The notes: generated by a model from the letters alone, not told the origin. A stretch of 64,000 nucleotides of DNA from Blepharisma stoltei ATCC 30299 (GCA_965603825.1 CBFDEM010000002.1:496001-560000), one strand, 5' to 3'; positions 21,649 to 52,958 are shown, numbered from the stretch's first letter. Program-made: numbers and translations.

Positions 21649-22956
21649 TTAACAATTATTCATCCCTTGTATTACAGATACAAATGAGAGGGTCTCCGAT
21701 TCCATTGTAAACCTATTCACCAATACAACCTGCTGCCTTGAAGTGAACTTTGGTATTGTTATGCAATGAACTCCTTCCTCAGTAACTAATTTCTGATAAT
21801 TTGGCATCCCTCCAACTACATACAAATTAGGCAAATCCTCTACAATAAAAGGATCATCATCTTGCATGGGGATACATCCTAAGGCATCTGGGGCGTTAGG
21901 TGCTAAATGCCTTCATTTCATAGTTAGCTCCAGTATCTTTATAGGGTCTTGCGTATCAATGAACTGCATTATTGCATTAATATTCTGCCCTGAAGTGCAA
22001 AGTATATGGATCCCATCTATTTTGCATTCATAAGGATTAGGGAAGCTTCTTAATGCAGAATATCTTGATGCCAAAGGAAATAAATAAGGGTTTAAAGGCT
22101 GCTGAGGCATTGAGGAATTCGACGGATCCATTTCTCCAGGAATCAAATCAACAGGAAGTATCCCTGCAAGCTCAGCGAGAAAAGTGTCAAAAAACTCTAG
22201 TGATTTTGATATAGAAGGTACTATATCTGCACTTATGTCACTGTAGGCTTTTTGCTCGAAAGAATTTTCTTTATCGGCTTTATACAATGAATTTCCCAGG
22301 ATCACAAATCTTACGATGTTTTTTGCAACTTCTGCGGAATCGTTTCCAAGGTTTCCTTGGAGAAAATTTGATAATAAATTTAGGAGAATTGGGTCCAATG
22401 AAGGATTTCCTATTTCAATTCCTGAAATAAAGCAAATAAATTCATCGCCTTTGCGCAATAAAGGTCTTGGTGGGTCTGCAGAGGGGTAAAATATTTCGAT
22501 AACTTCTAAAACAGAATTTTCTCTCATTACTCCTCTTACAGCTACAACTAAACCAGTTATTAAATTTTCCCAGTCAAAATATTGCTTTAGATCAAGTCTG
22601 ACCCTTCCTGACTCGTCTTCCAGATATATAAAATCTTCTTCTTTCCGTCTATTATAAAAAGTTGACTGCTTTCTATCAGCTAAAATCCCTATTTTCGATA
22701 TATATTTTTCTACTATAGAGCTTCTGTCTGCGTAGGTACAAACAATAATTCCTGCAATTAAACAGCTTTGATTGACTTTGACTTCCATTATTTCTGAGAG
22801 AGAAAAATACCCAGACTCGTCAGCAGAAATACAGCGATATTTGAGAGACTTTAGCCTTGCACAGTATAAAGAGTGATATTGGGAGGTAAAATCGAGCTTT
22901 GCTATGAATTGTTGGCCGATGAAGGAATGCTGGTAAGTAATCTTTCGCTCGATCAT
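21649..22956 (-). CDS. POLD2: DNA polymerase delta subunit 2
   Basis: QYHSLYCARL, LEDESGRVRL, PGEMDPSNSSMPQQPL, SGQNI, and W(TGA)RHLAPNAPD. Confidence 0.93.
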
Positions 22957-33988: not shown

Positions 33989-34364
33989 TGAAAATTAAAA
34001 GAAGTTAATTTCGAGAAAGTCAAATAAGAACTTGCTTGCTTTTACTATAGAATATAAATTAAAAATATTTAAACAATTTTTATTATTCTGAAGAAGAAAA
34101 GATTTTATTTCATAAATCATAATAATTTAAACTAAATTTCCATATAAAAATGATCAAAATATTGGGTTACAATGATTCCAATTCAAACTTAAAAAGTTGT
34201 ATTTGCAGTGATAAAAAAATATTAAATCTTTTTATAAATTAATCATTATCCCACATATCACTTAGAAGTCTTTTTCATCTAAACAACTCTCCTGCTCTAA
34301 ACAATTTTTTCCTTATCTAAACTCCATTAACCTTATATCTGCTTTATAATTTAGGCCATATTTG

Positions 34365-35828
34365 ATGGGTTGCATCCAAGCGCCAGCACCAGGCTCTGAT
34401 TTTACTCTTCAGCCTGAAATTTCAACACCTCTGAACTCTGCAGAAAATAAAAAATTCAAATGCTCAAAGTTCGGAAAAGTTGCTGATACTTATTCTGTCC
34501 AAGAAAGAATAGAATCAGGATCATTCAGTACCGTGGTAAGAGCCGTTGATCAAGAAGGCAACGAAAGAGCAATAAGACTTATAAACAAATCAGTGATAGA
34601 CCCAAACTCCATCTATAAGTTTAACAACGCGCTAGAGATTCTTATGGAATTGGACCATATGAATATGGTCAAAGTTTTTGAAGTAATTGAAGACGAATTT
34701 ACTATCAATATAGTCACTGAGTTTTGCACTGGGAAAGACCTAATTGGAAAAATTGCTGACTGCAGTCCATTTTCCGAAAACCAAGCAGCTGTTATTATGT
34801 ACCAAGTGTTATCAGCGTTAATTTCTACCCATGAAGCTGGGATTATTCATTGGGATCTGCACCCTGAAAACCTAGTCTTCCTTGATAGCTCTGATGAAGC
34901 GCCTCTAAAAATCACTGAATTCGGTGTCTTCCAGTGGCTGAAATCAGTTCCTTCAATAACCGAAAATATTGACGTCACTTTTTATACAGCGCCAGAAGTA
35001 ATTGAAGGTAAATTTGACAATAAATGCGATATTTGGAGCTGTGGAGCTATGCTTTATACAATGCTAAGCGGAGAGCCACCTTTTACAGGCAGCAATAAAG
35101 ATGAAATCTTTGCAAGCATCAAGGAAGCGAATATTAAGCTTAAGGGATCAAGATGGTCAAAAATTTCCCAAGAAGCAAAAGATTTAATAAGAAAAATGCT
35201 CGTGCTTGACCCATCTGAAAGAATTACCGCACAAGAAGCATGGGAGGATACTTGGATTCAAGATAGAGCAAACGGTGTTATTGACGACAACGAAATCAGT
35301 TCAAGAGTAGTCAGAAAACTCGTTGAATTCAAAGTAAATTTTATATAGGCAAAAAACAAACTTCAACAAGCTACTATGGCATTTATTTCCAGCTATTTAT
35401 TACCTTCTCAAGACCTAGCCGATCTTAAAAAACAATTCGAGTCTCTCGATGTAAATCATGATGGAAAATTGAGCCAAGATGAACTCAGAAGGGGCTTTGA
35501 AAAATTCCCTAATTTGGCTGGAATTAACATTTCCGAGGTCTTTAAGAACTGCGATTTAGATGCAAATGGGTTTGTAAGCTACCAGGAATTCATTGACGCA
35601 ACGCTAAATTGGCAAAAAGAGTTGACACAAGAGAGACTTGAAGCGACATTTAAAGCTATAGATAAAGATAACAGTGGAACATTGACAGCTGATGAAGTCA
35701 AAGCGTTTATTGGGGATGGAGCTGACGATAGAGAGTGGAAAAGGATTTTGAAAGATGCTGATCTTAATGGAGATGGAGTTTTGGACCTTGATGAGTTTAA
35801 GGGAGCTATGGTTAGATTAATGTCCTAA
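34365..35828 (+). CDS. CDPK-like pseudokinase with 4 EF-hands
   Basis: Kinase fold, junction and 4 EF-hands. Intron 35334-35348. Catalytic motifs altered (AIR, HWDLHPEN, EFG). Confidence 0.9.
35334..35348 (+). other. 15-nt intron gtaaattttatatag
   Basis: Removal gives VEFK-AKNKLQQATM, colinear with the intronless paralogue VQFR-TRNKLQQATM. Confidence 0.93.
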
Positions 35829-35908
35829 GGATAAGACTTATTTAATCAGTTGAAAACGGATAGATATCTAAACTTTGTATATTTTATATAGCGAGTAATA
35901 CAAATATA

Positions 35909-37414
35909 ATGGGTTGCATAAATTCAACACCTCAAAACGCTACGGAGTTTAAGCCAACAGATAACCCTGATGTATCAGCAGAAGTTTCTATTACTAGCCC
36001 ATCTAAAAATCTCCCAAGAGACTCAATTCTTATTAATCGCAAACAGTTCATTTTTTCGCGTCTCGGACAAATTACTGATTACTATATAATTCATGATGAA
36101 ATTGGCTCAGGGGCATTTTCTACAGTTAAAAGAGCAACCCATAAAGAAACGAATCTGCCAAGAGCTATAAAAATAATTTCAAAATCTGGAATTGCTGATG
36201 AGGTAAGAGAAAAGCTCAATGAAGAAGTAGAAATTCTTAAAGAGCTTGACCATCCGAATATTATTAAAATTTATGAAATTATTGAAGATGATAGCTCACT
36301 GAATATTGTTACTGAGTTATGTGAAGGTCAAGAATTATTTAATAAAATTGTTGAGTGTAAGCCTTTTTCTGAAACACAAGCAGCTATTATTATGTATCAA
36401 ATTCTATCTGGGCTGATTATGGCGCATCAGCGTGGCATAGTTCATAGAGACTTGAAGCCTGAAAATCTCTTATTTCTAAACAACAGTAAAGACTCCCCCT
36501 TAAAAATAATTGATTTTGGTTTATCCCAAAAAATCAAAGCTGAAAATAAATCAGTCAATTTTGTAGGAACTGCTTATTATATAGCTCCAGAAGTGTTAGA
36601 AAGCAATTATAATACAAAGTGTGATCTATGAAGCTGTGGAGTTATTTTATATTTAATGCTGTGTGGGCATCCTCCATTCAATGGAACTTCTGAAGAGCAG
36701 ATTTTTAAAAAAATATCAAGAGGCGTTTTTCCATTCAAAGGTAATGAATGAGCTGTGGTGTCACGTGAAGCTAAGAATTTAATCAAAAAAATGCTAACAA
36801 AAGACATATCAAAACGATGCAGTGCTGAAGAAGCTTTTCAAGACCCATGGGTGCAAGAGAGAGTTCAAGGACTTGTTGCAGATCGGCTGATTGATGAAAA
36901 TGTTCTGTTAAATCTTGTGCAATTCAGAACCAGAAATAAGCTTCAACAAGCCACAATGGCATTTATCGCAAGCCATTTTGTATCAAATCAAGAAATTGAA
37001 GGCCTGAGAAAAATGTTTGTCACCTTGGATGCTAATGGTGATGGAAAGCTAAATTTAGATGAATTAAGGAGAGGCTTTGCTAAATACCCAAATTTATCCA
37101 AGATGAATATTCAAGAAATACTTGAAAATTGTGATGTGGATAATAATGGATTTATTGACTATAACGAATTTTTAGCAGCAACGCTAAATTGACAGAAAAC
37201 TTTATCACATGAGAGATTAGAAGCGGCATTTAAAGCTTTTGATTCGGATCAAAGTGGAAGTATAACAGTTAAAGAAATTAAGTCATTTTTAGGAGATGAG
37301 TCAGAGCTGGAGGAAGGAATTTGGGAACAGATTTTAAAAGAAGCTGACACTAATGGAGATGGGGTTTTAGATCTAGAAGAATTTAAAAATGTGATGCTGA
37401 AGAAAATTGATTAA
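35909..37414 (+). CDS. Calcium-dependent protein kinase (CDPK), canonical motifs
   Basis: GSGAFS, AIK, HRDLKPEN, DFG, APE, KCDL-W(TGA)-SCG and 4 EF-hands. Three TGA-Trp. Confidence 0.95.
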
Positions 37415-37621
37415 AATTTTATTTAATCATTTAAATTAGTTAAATTTCATGGAATTTGTGCTTTTAAATGGGAAATTTTATGGTTTGAAAAGCAGTAGTC
37501 GTTTAAGCTGAAAGAATTAGGTTAATAGCTTGTAGGTATTATATTGTATTAAAAGACACTTGTGGTTAAGTAAAGCATAACTGATATATAGGAAATATAT
37601 GATATGTGTTTTAAAAATAAA

Positions 37622-37693
37622 CTCTCGGTGGTGTATCGTGCACGCCTGTACGAGATAACTCAGGAGGTGGAAGTTCGAGTCTTCCTCGAGAGA
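37622..37693 (+). ncRNA. tRNA-like RNA with aberrant D loop and anticodon arm
   Basis: Acceptor CTCTCGG/TCGAGAG plus A; D stem GTGT/GCAC; CCTG/CAGG stem; T arm GGAAG-TTCGAGT-CTTCC; T6 terminator at 37695-37700. Confidence 0.75.
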
Positions 37694-38139
37694 CTTTTTT
37701 CTGGTTATTATCTGTAAAAAATCAAACTTATATATATTCATGATTGCTTTACACATAATCCTTAAATAGGAAATCACCAGAAATAGCAAAAATATAAGCA
37801 TAAAAAATGTTTTTTAAATAAATAGACAAATATATTTTAATTTCACTTATTCTCTTATTTTTTCTTTATAATCTCTGACTCAGAGTTAAAATCTTTGCTT
37901 TTTTGCAATTTTTAGAATATAGGTCATTTGCAAATATTTCAGCAATAATAATTTAATAATCATAGCTATCAGTTATGAAAATAATTCAAGCAAACTTATC
38001 AAGTGATTGAATACTAAAGATAATAATGAAATTTTGAATAGTTTCTCATGAATATTTCATATTAAGAATTATCAGATTCAAATTTTCATATTTTATGCGT
38101 TTTAAGTTATTTTCCATATACAATTCTATAATTATTTTC

Positions 38140-46295: not shown

Positions 46296-46376
46296 GACAG
46301 TATGGCCGAGTGGTTAAGGCGACAGACTTGAAATCTGTTGGGATCTCCCGCGCAGGTTCGAATCCTGCTACTGTCG
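46296..46376 (+). tRNA. tRNA-Ser, anticodon UGA
   Basis: Acceptor GACAGTA/TACTGTC, G73, TGGCCGAGTGG, ACAGA-CTTGAAA-TCTGT, long variable arm, GGTTCGAATCC, T-run terminator and upstream TATA. Confidence 0.97.
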
Positions 46377-51754: not shown

Positions 51755-52958
51755 ATGTCTTTTGCCATCAAATTTGCTTTTCTCTACATTTTCATTTCCT
51801 CTTCTTTTGCTGCAATTTCTATTGACCTCCACCGTCGTTACAAAACCGGCAAAAAGCTTTCGGAATATCCATCAAATGTGCCGTTCTGAAGGAACATCGA
51901 ATAAGGTTACTAATTTTGAAAATGTAAAACTTATTTAGTGACTTTACTATGGGATGGTAAATATTGGAACTCCACCCCAAGTTTTTACTTGTCACATTGA
52001 CACCGGAAGTACAATGATATGGGTTGTTCAAACTGGATGCCAAGATTGCCATAAATGCAACAACACCTTTACGCCTTCCAAATCAAGTACATTTTCTACA
52101 GAATTCTACCCTTATAATTTAACTTACTTGAAAGGTAAGACTATAGGATATATTGCTTATGACACTTTAAGTCTTGGGGATGCAAGTATAAATGTAACTG
52201 ACCAACCTTTTGTGCTTGCGATTGGAGAAGAAGATGACGATGGTTATGCATCAGATGGACTTATCGGATTTGCCTTTGATTCTTTAGAGCCAGGCTACCC
52301 ATCCTTTATGACCCAGTTATATATTCAAGGGGAAATCAAGCATAGGACATTTGCTCTTTATTTAAACAAGGAAGGAGGAGATATTTCATCAAATCTCATG
52401 ATCGATGGCTATGATTTGAAAAAATATTCAAAAGATAAAGACTTCCTCTATTTAAATATATACCAGCAAAGTGGCTTTTGAAATCTTTTAAATACCCAAT
52501 TTAGCTTTGGAAATACAATTCTAGCGACTTACATTCCAGCTGTGCTTGATTCAGGCACGTCATGAATTTATGCCCCTGAAGAAATATATGAATCAATTTT
52601 AGATGAATTTATTGGGTCCTCCAGTTGCGAAATGATTTCAAAACAAATACAATGTCTTTGCGATAAAAAGTACCCTGATTTTAGCTGGATATTGAATGGG
52701 CATACGTTCAATATTTCGTCTGAATCTTATTTTTCTAAAAAACAAAAAATTGATGGAGTCAATTTATGCCAGTTCCTTCTTGGTAAGGGTTCAGAAGATG
52801 CATGACTGCTAGGTGATGTTTTTATGAGGAATTTTTATATAAATCATGACATGGATAATTTGAGAATAGGAATTGCAGAAGCTAGACATAGTGATAATGC
52901 ACTTAGGTGGATTTTCGAAGGATGGAAGCTGATTCTTATCCTAATCATTGCATCTTAA
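51755..52958 (+). CDS. Pepsin-family (A1) aspartic protease with a frame disruption in the pro-region
   Basis: Signal peptide from 51755; YYGMVNIGTPPQ, DTGS, DSGTS, W-LLGDVFMR. Intron 51924-51938. The leader frame hits TAA at 51902. Confidence 0.85.
51924..51938 (+). other. 15-nt intron gtaaaacttatttag
   Basis: Removal gives VTNFEN-WLYYG, the usual start of the mature pepsin fold. Confidence 0.85.

Follow-up and report, generated by a model that had tools for sequence, protein, structure and literature searches.

A candidate family of non-decoding tRNA-like RNAs with a tyrosine-type identity signature in Blepharisma stoltei

A locus that retains the acceptor and T-arm half of a tRNA together with signals of the kind used by Pol III, but presents no usable anticodon loop, raises the question whether it is a functional gene for an RNA that does not decode or the remnant of a tRNA gene. 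We addressed this question for a 72-nt locus in a 64,000-nt stretch of the Blepharisma stoltei ATCC 30299 genome (hereinafter, the window), which the initial annotation had described as a standalone non-decoding tRNA mimic with Pol III-type signals, a constrained body and a remodelled loop. The analysis of the sequence agrees with that description and, with moderate confidence, we lean towards the view that the locus is a functional gene for a non-decoding tRNA-like RNA.

The locus and its predicted fold

The features of the locus are as follows.

37583-37606, plus strand: upstream TATA-like tracts, GATATATAG at -39 to -31 and TATATGAT at -26 to -19 (consensus match only)
37622-37693, plus strand: tRNA-like gene body, 72 nt including the discriminator A37693, equivalent to Contig_10:533622-533693 of B. 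stoltei ATCC 30299
37622-37628, plus strand: 5' strand of the acceptor stem, CTCTCGG, pairing with 37686-37692 (C1-G72)
37629-37644, plus strand: U8-G9, D stem GTGT/GCAC (37631-37634 / 37640-37643), 5-nt D loop ATCGT and G26; partial A box
37645-37664, plus strand: anticodon-arm equivalent, a 4-bp CCTG/CAGG stem around a 12-nt loop (37649-37660)
37665-37685, plus strand: variable loop AGGT (4 nt) and perfect T arm GGAAG-TTCGAGT-CTTCC (B box, 37669-37685)
37686-37693, plus strand: 3' strand of the acceptor stem, TCGAGAG, and discriminator A73 (A37693)
37695-37700, plus strand: T6 Pol III-type terminator, 1 nt past the discriminator

The stems, discriminator A, D loop, 12-nt loop, T arm and T6 run that had been described at this locus were all recovered, and so was the GC-rich island in AT-rich DNA, with a GC content of 0.54 in the gene compared to 0.26 and 0.22 in its 300-nt flanks. 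The acceptor stem consists of 7 bp, with G7-U66 as the sole wobble pair; the D stem is unchanged in all three paralogues described below; and the T arm contains all canonical invariants, namely, G53, T54, T55, C56, R57, A58 and C61. The sequence at positions 8-14, TGGTGTA, is that of tRNA-Gln, but the GG of the A box and D loop is absent. In particular, the D loop ATCGT lacks the G18 and G19 of the elbow contact, a GG that is present in 47 of the 47 canonical B. stoltei tRNAs (here and below, one representative of each of the 47 isoacceptor types).

The window copy also lacks the combination of a 5-bp anticodon stem, a 7-nt loop, U33 and a purine at position 37 that is required of a canonical tRNA: its 12-nt loop shows neither U33 nor anticodon geometry, and the position homologous to 33 is occupied by G. 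When the register of the arm is moved by one base, stems of five positions with one or two mismatches can be drawn in all three copies, enclosing 8 nt in the window copy (where the loop is closed by an A.C mismatch), 7 nt in the Contig_8 copy and 6 nt in the Contig_6 copy. The anticodon arm of the window copy is thus aberrant, yet less chaotic than initially described. The hairpin at 37636-37653 that had been proposed as a mutually exclusive alternative does exist in the window copy, but its pairing is broken in the Contig_8 paralogue, and it was dropped as a conserved fold.

Comparison with Rfam and with tRNA gene finders, which had been envisaged when the locus was first annotated, gave a score above the cut-off for the tRNA model and negative results with the gene finders. 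In a local search, the Rfam tRNA model RF00005 matches over model positions 1-71 with 34.8 bits against a cut-off of 29 (E = 4.8e-6), and the Infernal alignment bypasses the inner anticodon arm, with 12 nt in place of 9 model positions; under this model, the cloverleaf at 37622-37693 is assessed to be beyond chance. The window-wide Rfam gathering scan, which applies the speed filters of Rfam, reported the tRNA-Ser at 46296-46376 only and missed the tRNA-like gene. Similarly, ARAGORN called the tRNA-Ser at 46296-46376 in the window and nothing at 37622-37693, and the published tRNAscan-SE table (169 genes) contains no entry at Contig_10:533622-533693. A covariance model built from the family copies (R1) scores the window copy at 99 bits. 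For the three paralogues together, RNAalifold predicts a cloverleaf with no structure supplied; for the window copy alone, the predicted cloverleaf (-20.8 kcal/mol) lies 4.7 kcal/mol above the minimum-energy rod (-25.5 kcal/mol). With no ARAGORN call, no GG in the D loop and a minimum-energy fold other than the cloverleaf, the window copy departs further from a tRNA than either of its paralogues.

These features, along with the absence from the published tRNAscan-SE set and the drift of the anticodon loop, are what would be expected if the locus were the relic of an old tRNA gene that has fallen silent or is dying. Its sequence would be kept for reasons at the DNA level, for instance because TFIIIC or Pol III bound at the A and B boxes provides a landmark for chromatin or replication, or would be homogenized by gene conversion, with no functional RNA made from the window copy. 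We consider such a relic to be rather unlikely in view of the comparison of the paralogues below.

With respect to transcription, the TATA-like tract that had been noted upstream, as at the tRNA-Ser gene in the window, is represented by consensus matches at -39 to -31 and -26 to -19, compared to the interval from -37 to -27 that holds the best TATA-like match for roughly three in four of the 47 canonical genes. The TATA-like tracts of the family, all of them consensus matches, are at -39 and -26 (window copy), -47 and -38 (Contig_8) and -31 (Contig_6). The terminators are T5-T6 runs at offset 1 in all three family members and T4-T7 runs at offset 0-3 in the canonical tRNAs.

Three paralogues and an old duplication

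BLAST, an exact T-arm pattern and the covariance model R1 agree on exactly three copies in the macronuclear genome of 41,464,486 bases, the 64 contigs of which extend from telomere to telomere according to the genome paper, and R1 detected no further distant members in it. The copies are listed here with our own contig labels, which follow a lexicographic numbering.

Contig_10:533622-533693 (G000:C2), plus strand: paralogue 1, the window copy
Contig_8:155484-155554 (G000:C63), plus strand: paralogue 2, detected by BLAST, T-arm pattern and R1
Contig_6:376565-376636 (G000:C56), minus strand: paralogue 3, detected by BLAST, T-arm pattern and R1

The Contig_10 and Contig_8 copies are embedded in paralogous blocks, in which the protein-coding genes (kinase-like upstream, other downstream) share 65-76% DNA identity; the intergenic DNA of the two blocks is unalignable, and the tRNA-like stretch within it aligns at 94%. 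In global alignments, the 100- and 200-nt flanks show an identity of 0.61-0.63, compared to 0.59-0.61 +/- 0.02-0.03 for shuffled sequences. Given that the identity of the flanks is at the level of the shuffles, neutral sites are saturated, so that these two copies are old. Within the RNA, a single difference between the two copies falls among the 60 positions outside the loop, compared to four among its 12 aligned columns (Fisher p = 0.002). A bona fide tRNA-Ser(TGA), located downstream of the tRNA-like gene at a distance of 8.7 kb on Contig_10 and 5.3 kb on Contig_8, displays a similar pattern, being identical in both blocks amid diverged flanks.

Immediately upstream of the tRNA-like gene in the window are two tandem open reading frames for EF-hand/kinase-like proteins (34350-35825 and 35864-37411, both on the plus strand). 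Both predicted proteins begin with MGC, as is often the case in calcium-dependent protein kinases; this may be a motif for N-myristoylation/palmitoylation. The second of these reading frames (35864-37411) is matched, at approximately 48% identity, by a paralogue that precedes the Contig_8 copy in the block G000:C63:153983-157060, which indicates an old segmental duplication that included the tRNA-Ser(TGA).

The Contig_10 and Contig_8 copies share the same variable loop and T arm, and the Contig_6 copy has a single loop change in this part. In the acceptor stem of the Contig_6 copy, T4-A69 is replaced by C-G, C5-G68 by U-G and G7-U66 by A-U, so that all three pairs are kept; over the paralogues, this amounts to one compensatory and two one-sided pair-preserving (wobble) changes, with 100% of the cells paired. 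Thus, of the additional copies and covariation that the initial annotation had called for, the former exist, as two paralogues in B. stoltei, whereas the latter is weak, consisting of a single double change among three paralogues that is matched by 155 of 500 shuffles.

Taken together, the conservation over the entire body, not just the A and B boxes, and the respect for pairing point to selection at the level of the RNA, and we interpret the sequence comparison as purifying selection over the tRNA-like body, with a relaxed anticodon loop. The original claim of selection, as opposed to random decay of a current tRNA, is borne out to the extent that a nearly invariant body contrasts with a variable loop and randomized flanks, and no parent tRNA was found. 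The same observations argue against a relic. Conservation that extends over all 60 body positions, and takes in the variable loop, the anticodon stem and the 3' side of the acceptor stem, goes beyond what binding to the A and B boxes would call for, the acceptor pairing of the Contig_6 copy survives three changes, and the fully randomized flanks imply that the copies are old. Gene conversion fares no better, as a conversion tract would have homogenized the central loop as well.

Representatives in other Blepharisma species

The raw ARAGORN output published by the laboratory that sequenced the B. stoltei genome lists the Contig_8 copy as tRNA-Ser(gga) and the Contig_6 copy as tRNA-?(Thr|Tyr)(gt) (bioRxiv 10.1101/2023.10.09.561518). 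We identified orthologues from the published ARAGORN drawings, which cover the Contig_8 and Contig_6 types, the window copy being uncalled by ARAGORN. In B. japonicum, both types are present with cloverleaf drawings identical to those of B. stoltei, and the Contig_8 type is found in a conserved Leu(aag) ... Ser(tga) gene order. In B. undulans, the Contig_6 type is present with two changes relative to B. stoltei, one that turns an acceptor G-C pair into G-U and one in the anticodon stem, where B. undulans has a U-A pair in place of U.U; the 6-nt loop GTGTAA is unchanged. For comparison, neutral flanks at another locus are about 60% identical among these species (bioRxiv 10.1101/2023.10.09.561518). 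On the strength of the drawings, two members of the family (the Contig_8 and Contig_6 types) are more conserved across Blepharisma than flanking DNA and are conserved at the level of the genus.

The U.U mismatch in the anticodon stem of the Contig_6 copy, shared by B. stoltei and B. japonicum, is compatible with a decaying gene; it probably is a derived weakening because the other paralogues, like B. undulans, have U-A at this position. Outside the genus, an exact-pattern search of the JGI metagenomes detected no homologue, and a looser structural pattern retrieved from them four ordinary GC-rich tRNAs, apparently prokaryotic, and nothing relevant.

Tyrosine signature and origin

The C1-G72 pair and A73 are the identity elements of eukaryotic and archaeal TyrRS. 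All three paralogues possess this combination, and among the 47 canonical isoacceptor representatives, it is found in tRNA-Tyr alone. When the Contig_6 copy is aligned to the tRNA model with Infernal, it reads U33-GUA-A37 with one inserted base; the homologous anticodon columns are G-AUA-A in the window copy and a purine-rich string in the Contig_8 copy. No copy carries GUA in a 7-nt loop: the triplet occurs in the Contig_6 paralogue only and there with one extra loop base. The otherwise tRNA-Tyr-specific C1-G72/A73 set and the U33-GUA-A37 of the Contig_6 copy make an origin from tyrosine tRNA likely, and both strengthen the Tyr-type identity that had been assigned to the window copy. On this evidence, the Contig_10/8/6 family is probably derived from tyrosine tRNA, and the window copy likely belongs to a lineage that arose from a tyrosine tRNA long ago and in which constraint on the anticodon loop was lifted.

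The resemblance to the present-day tRNA-Tyr does not go much further. The genuine B. stoltei tRNA-Tyr(GUA) is encoded by four genes that do not differ from one another and contain a 10-nt intron; it shares with the window copy C1-G72, A73, an upstream TATA and the T-run, whereas the D arm, the T stem and acceptor bases 2-7 are unrelated, and the window copy is intronless, with a 12-nt loop and no GUA in register. The best canonical match of the window copy, at 47-49 of 72 positions, reflects generic tRNA similarity, with the D arm alone resembling the Gln/Arg type, and no parent gene emerged among the 47 canonical isoacceptor representatives. A recent tRNA-Tyr pseudogene or an assembly error can be rejected, considering that the four tRNA-Tyr bodies are unrelated and that two paralogues and orthologues exist. 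More generally, the window copy shares with ordinary tRNA pseudogenes a low tRNA model score, the missing anticodon and the damaged D loop but, unlike these, it has no identifiable parent, retains 59 of 60 body positions against randomized flanks, and has sister copies with orthologues in other species.

The presence of GUA in one copy brings up the possibility that these genes encode a decoding isoacceptor of the tyrosine type, with the loop repaired by editing or by a non-canonical mini-intron, or else read as a quadruplet or through frameshifting. The Contig_6 loop departs from U33-GUA-A37 by a single extra base and comprises 8 nt, or 6 nt if G32 pairs with C38; the Contig_8 copy has a 7-nt loop in the shifted register and is called tRNA-Ser(gga) by ARAGORN; and B. 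stoltei already uses an unusual tRNA-Trp with a 4-bp anticodon stem. However, the window and Contig_8 copies have G rather than U at position 33, and their nominal anticodons differ (AUA as against GGA or GAA, depending on the register); combined with tyrosine identity, these would mistranslate Ile or Ser/Phe codons. The 17-nt arm would require the removal of 1-3 nt, far less than the 10-nt intron of tRNA-Tyr, and a tiny intron that restores a normal arm was rejected for this reason. Furthermore, the decoding set is already complete, and tRNA-Tyr is covered by four canonical genes. We therefore regard decoding by these RNAs as very unlikely. A UCA (UGA-decoding) anticodon, as in the Contig_39 RNA discussed below, was rejected as well: by inspection, TCA straddles the border between loop and stem, and no supporting stem can be drawn.

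With regard to charging, five genes with the PF00579 domain (class Ic synthetases) were identified, namely, one cytosolic-type TyrRS, one bacterial-type TyrRS (assigned by motif inspection) and three TrpRS, in agreement with the published paper. With no spare copy among the five, a dedicated extra TyrRS was rejected. The bacterial-type TyrRS gene, presumably mitochondrial in function (G000:C52:51118-52011), contains an in-frame TGA, which fits the nuclear assignment of UGA to Trp.

Comparison with known tRNA-like RNAs

In the Rfam search, the only matches at E <= 10 besides tRNA were mascRNA-menRNA (RF01684), at 18.7 bits against a cut-off of 42.5, and a chance miRNA match. Membership in the mascRNA-menRNA family was rejected on that score, and SRP, Y and vault RNA were rejected for want of an Rfam match. 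There are similarities in form: the mascRNA and MEN-beta RNAs are tRNA-shaped and, as in the window copy, their acceptor/T half is intact and their anticodon arm degenerate, and the corresponding expectation for the window RNA would be cleavage by RNase P and RNase Z and addition of a CCA tail without decoding. In vertebrates, a long transcript made by Pol II yields mascRNA from its 3' end, whereas the window copy is a gene that stands by itself and carries a terminator of its own.

The initial annotation had also pointed to the SRP Alu domain and to the tRNA-like RNA of trypanosome SRP, a link that found no support. In trypanosomatids, the tRNA-like sRNA-76/85 substitutes for an absent SRP Alu domain, and the likeness to it is that of a tRNA-like Pol III RNA with a non-translational role; there is no sequence or model match. 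B. stoltei has a single SRP RNA gene (G000:C18:120757-121049; RF00017, 122.6 bits; RF01856, 116.2 bits). This RNA covers RF00017 positions 1-299, including the Alu end and, being an ordinary full-length SRP RNA with an Alu domain, has no need for a trypanosome-style partner. A tRNA-derived SINE was rejected given that there are three copies only, with the terminator 1 nt after the discriminator and no 3' extension. Overall, the general tRNA-like shape and the weak mascRNA-menRNA match notwithstanding, the low score, the normal SRP RNA and the three compact copies render it extremely improbable that the locus encodes an SRP-associated RNA of the trypanosomatid style or a member of another described family (mascRNA, Y RNA, vault RNA or SINE).

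The closest comparison is provided by the tRNA-like RNAs that have been published for Blepharisma itself. Six macronuclear loci that are negative by tRNAscan-SE have YAMAT-seq coverage of 620-7800x, and four of the six are named, Contig_39-tRNA-like(UCA) and three on Contig_1; the named loci show non-templated CCA tails, modification signatures and cross-species conservation (bioRxiv 10.1101/2023.10.09.561518 and its supplement). The Contig_10/8/6 family does not figure in the text of that paper and appears in the raw ARAGORN output only (bioRxiv 10.1101/2023.10.09.561518). The original designation of the window locus as an undescribed system was, accordingly, too strong, the same laboratory having reported other expressed, CCA-tailed tRNA-like RNAs in B. 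stoltei. Since four of the six highly covered loci are other genes, at most two of the three Contig_10/8/6 loci can be highly covered, and the resulting conclusion that at least one family locus lies outside the six is compatible with a relic.

Two tandem genes of the Contig_1 cluster, for which the coverage is 7700x (bioRxiv 10.1101/2023.10.09.561518), were located at G000:C1:246555-246624 and about 246763-246830; they have the acceptor TCCARGG/CCYTGGA, discriminator C, a T-run and the loop TTTCTCACTC, and show no match to the Rfam tRNA model at E <= 1. Like the window copy, the Contig_39 and Contig_1 RNAs are about 70-72 nt long, of Pol III type and tRNAscan-SE-negative; their acceptor/T half is intact, and their 'anticodon' stem is short and its loop larger than normal. 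They also exceed their flanks in conservation across Blepharisma species. By contrast, they are unrelated in sequence to the Contig_10/8/6 family, neither R1 nor BLAST connecting the two; they have T1-A72 and C73 instead of C1-G72 and A73; and their paralogues share the loop, which differs between the Contig_10/8/6 paralogues. YAMAT-seq and CCA evidence has been published for the Contig_39 and Contig_1 RNAs. That very aberrant tRNA-like genes are expressed and matured in B. stoltei makes maturation of the Contig_10/8/6 transcripts plausible by analogy.

Additional aberrant tRNA genes were observed in the B. stoltei genome. About a dozen low-scoring tRNAscan-SE calls have the common acceptor TCAGAGG...CCTCTGA or a near variant, discriminator C and a T arm of the CCAGG/CCTGG type (G000:C12:83102-83173, C38:104467-104538, C3:113481-113552, C10:276672-276744, C62:61870-61942, C42:21582-21656, 21724-21795 and 52403-52475, C37:127654-127725, C33:56559-56630, C15:410082-410154 and 410325-410395). 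Their anticodons are assigned to Val, Arg, Ser, Leu, Ala, Glu, Met and Phe or are undetermined, and in some of these genes a 4-bp stem closes a loop of 9-10 nt; judging by these sequences, the group looks like a second, larger tRNA-like family with a shuffled bottom half. Another conserved aberrant tRNA is a 69-nt 'tRNA-Lys(ttt)' at G000:C4:968603-968671 (tRNAscan-SE score 38.5), in which the T stem is mismatched and the anticodon arm is unusual; the ARAGORN drawings for B. undulans and B. japonicum show nearly the same molecule.

Possible function and significance

Under the preferred interpretation, that of a functional gene for a non-decoding tRNA-like RNA, the sequence of the locus suggests the following sequence of events. 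The upstream TATA-like element and the internal A and B boxes would drive transcription by Pol III, which would stop at the T6 run. The intact acceptor/T half would then be recognized by RNase P, RNase Z and the CCA-adding enzyme, yielding a CCA-tailed RNA of about 75 nt, as with the other B. stoltei tRNA-like genes detected by YAMAT-seq. Given the enlarged loop, without U33 or the 7-nt anticodon geometry, ordinary triplet decoding by this RNA is implausible. Since the old duplication, the body, the acceptor pairing and the TyrRS set C1-G72/A73 have been kept by selection, whereas the loop drifted. Speculatively, the function would reside in the top half of the molecule, which might act as a tyrosine-chargeable carrier, as a decoy of TyrRS off the ribosome, or as the precursor of a 3' tRNA fragment.

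A more elaborate version, which we view as quite improbable, holds that the family members are tyrosine-identity look-alikes that are CCA-tailed, charged by TyrRS and kept off the ribosome to serve as a carrier, as a decoy for a synthetase or amino-acid sensor, or as a source of 3' fragments, with the loop of each paralogue conferring a distinct partner specificity. Conceivably, as a variant of the same reading, the Contig_6 member, with GUA in a loop of 6 or 8 nt, would engage in non-triplet decoding at Tyr codons. The lack of an extra TyrRS gene in B. stoltei counts against a dedicated charging system.

Non-decoding tRNA look-alikes are already known, with examples published for B. stoltei, so the category is not new. 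The Contig_10/8/6 family itself is unannotated and undiscussed; it has a clean tyrosine identity signature, and an old duplication serves as an internal control that reveals a selected tRNA body and a freed anticodon loop. The family thus provides a tractable case for the role that the top half of a tRNA may play once decoding is lost. Blepharisma, in which the nuclear code assigns UGA to tryptophan and tRNA-Trp has a 4-bp anticodon stem, holds several independent families of tRNA-like genes.
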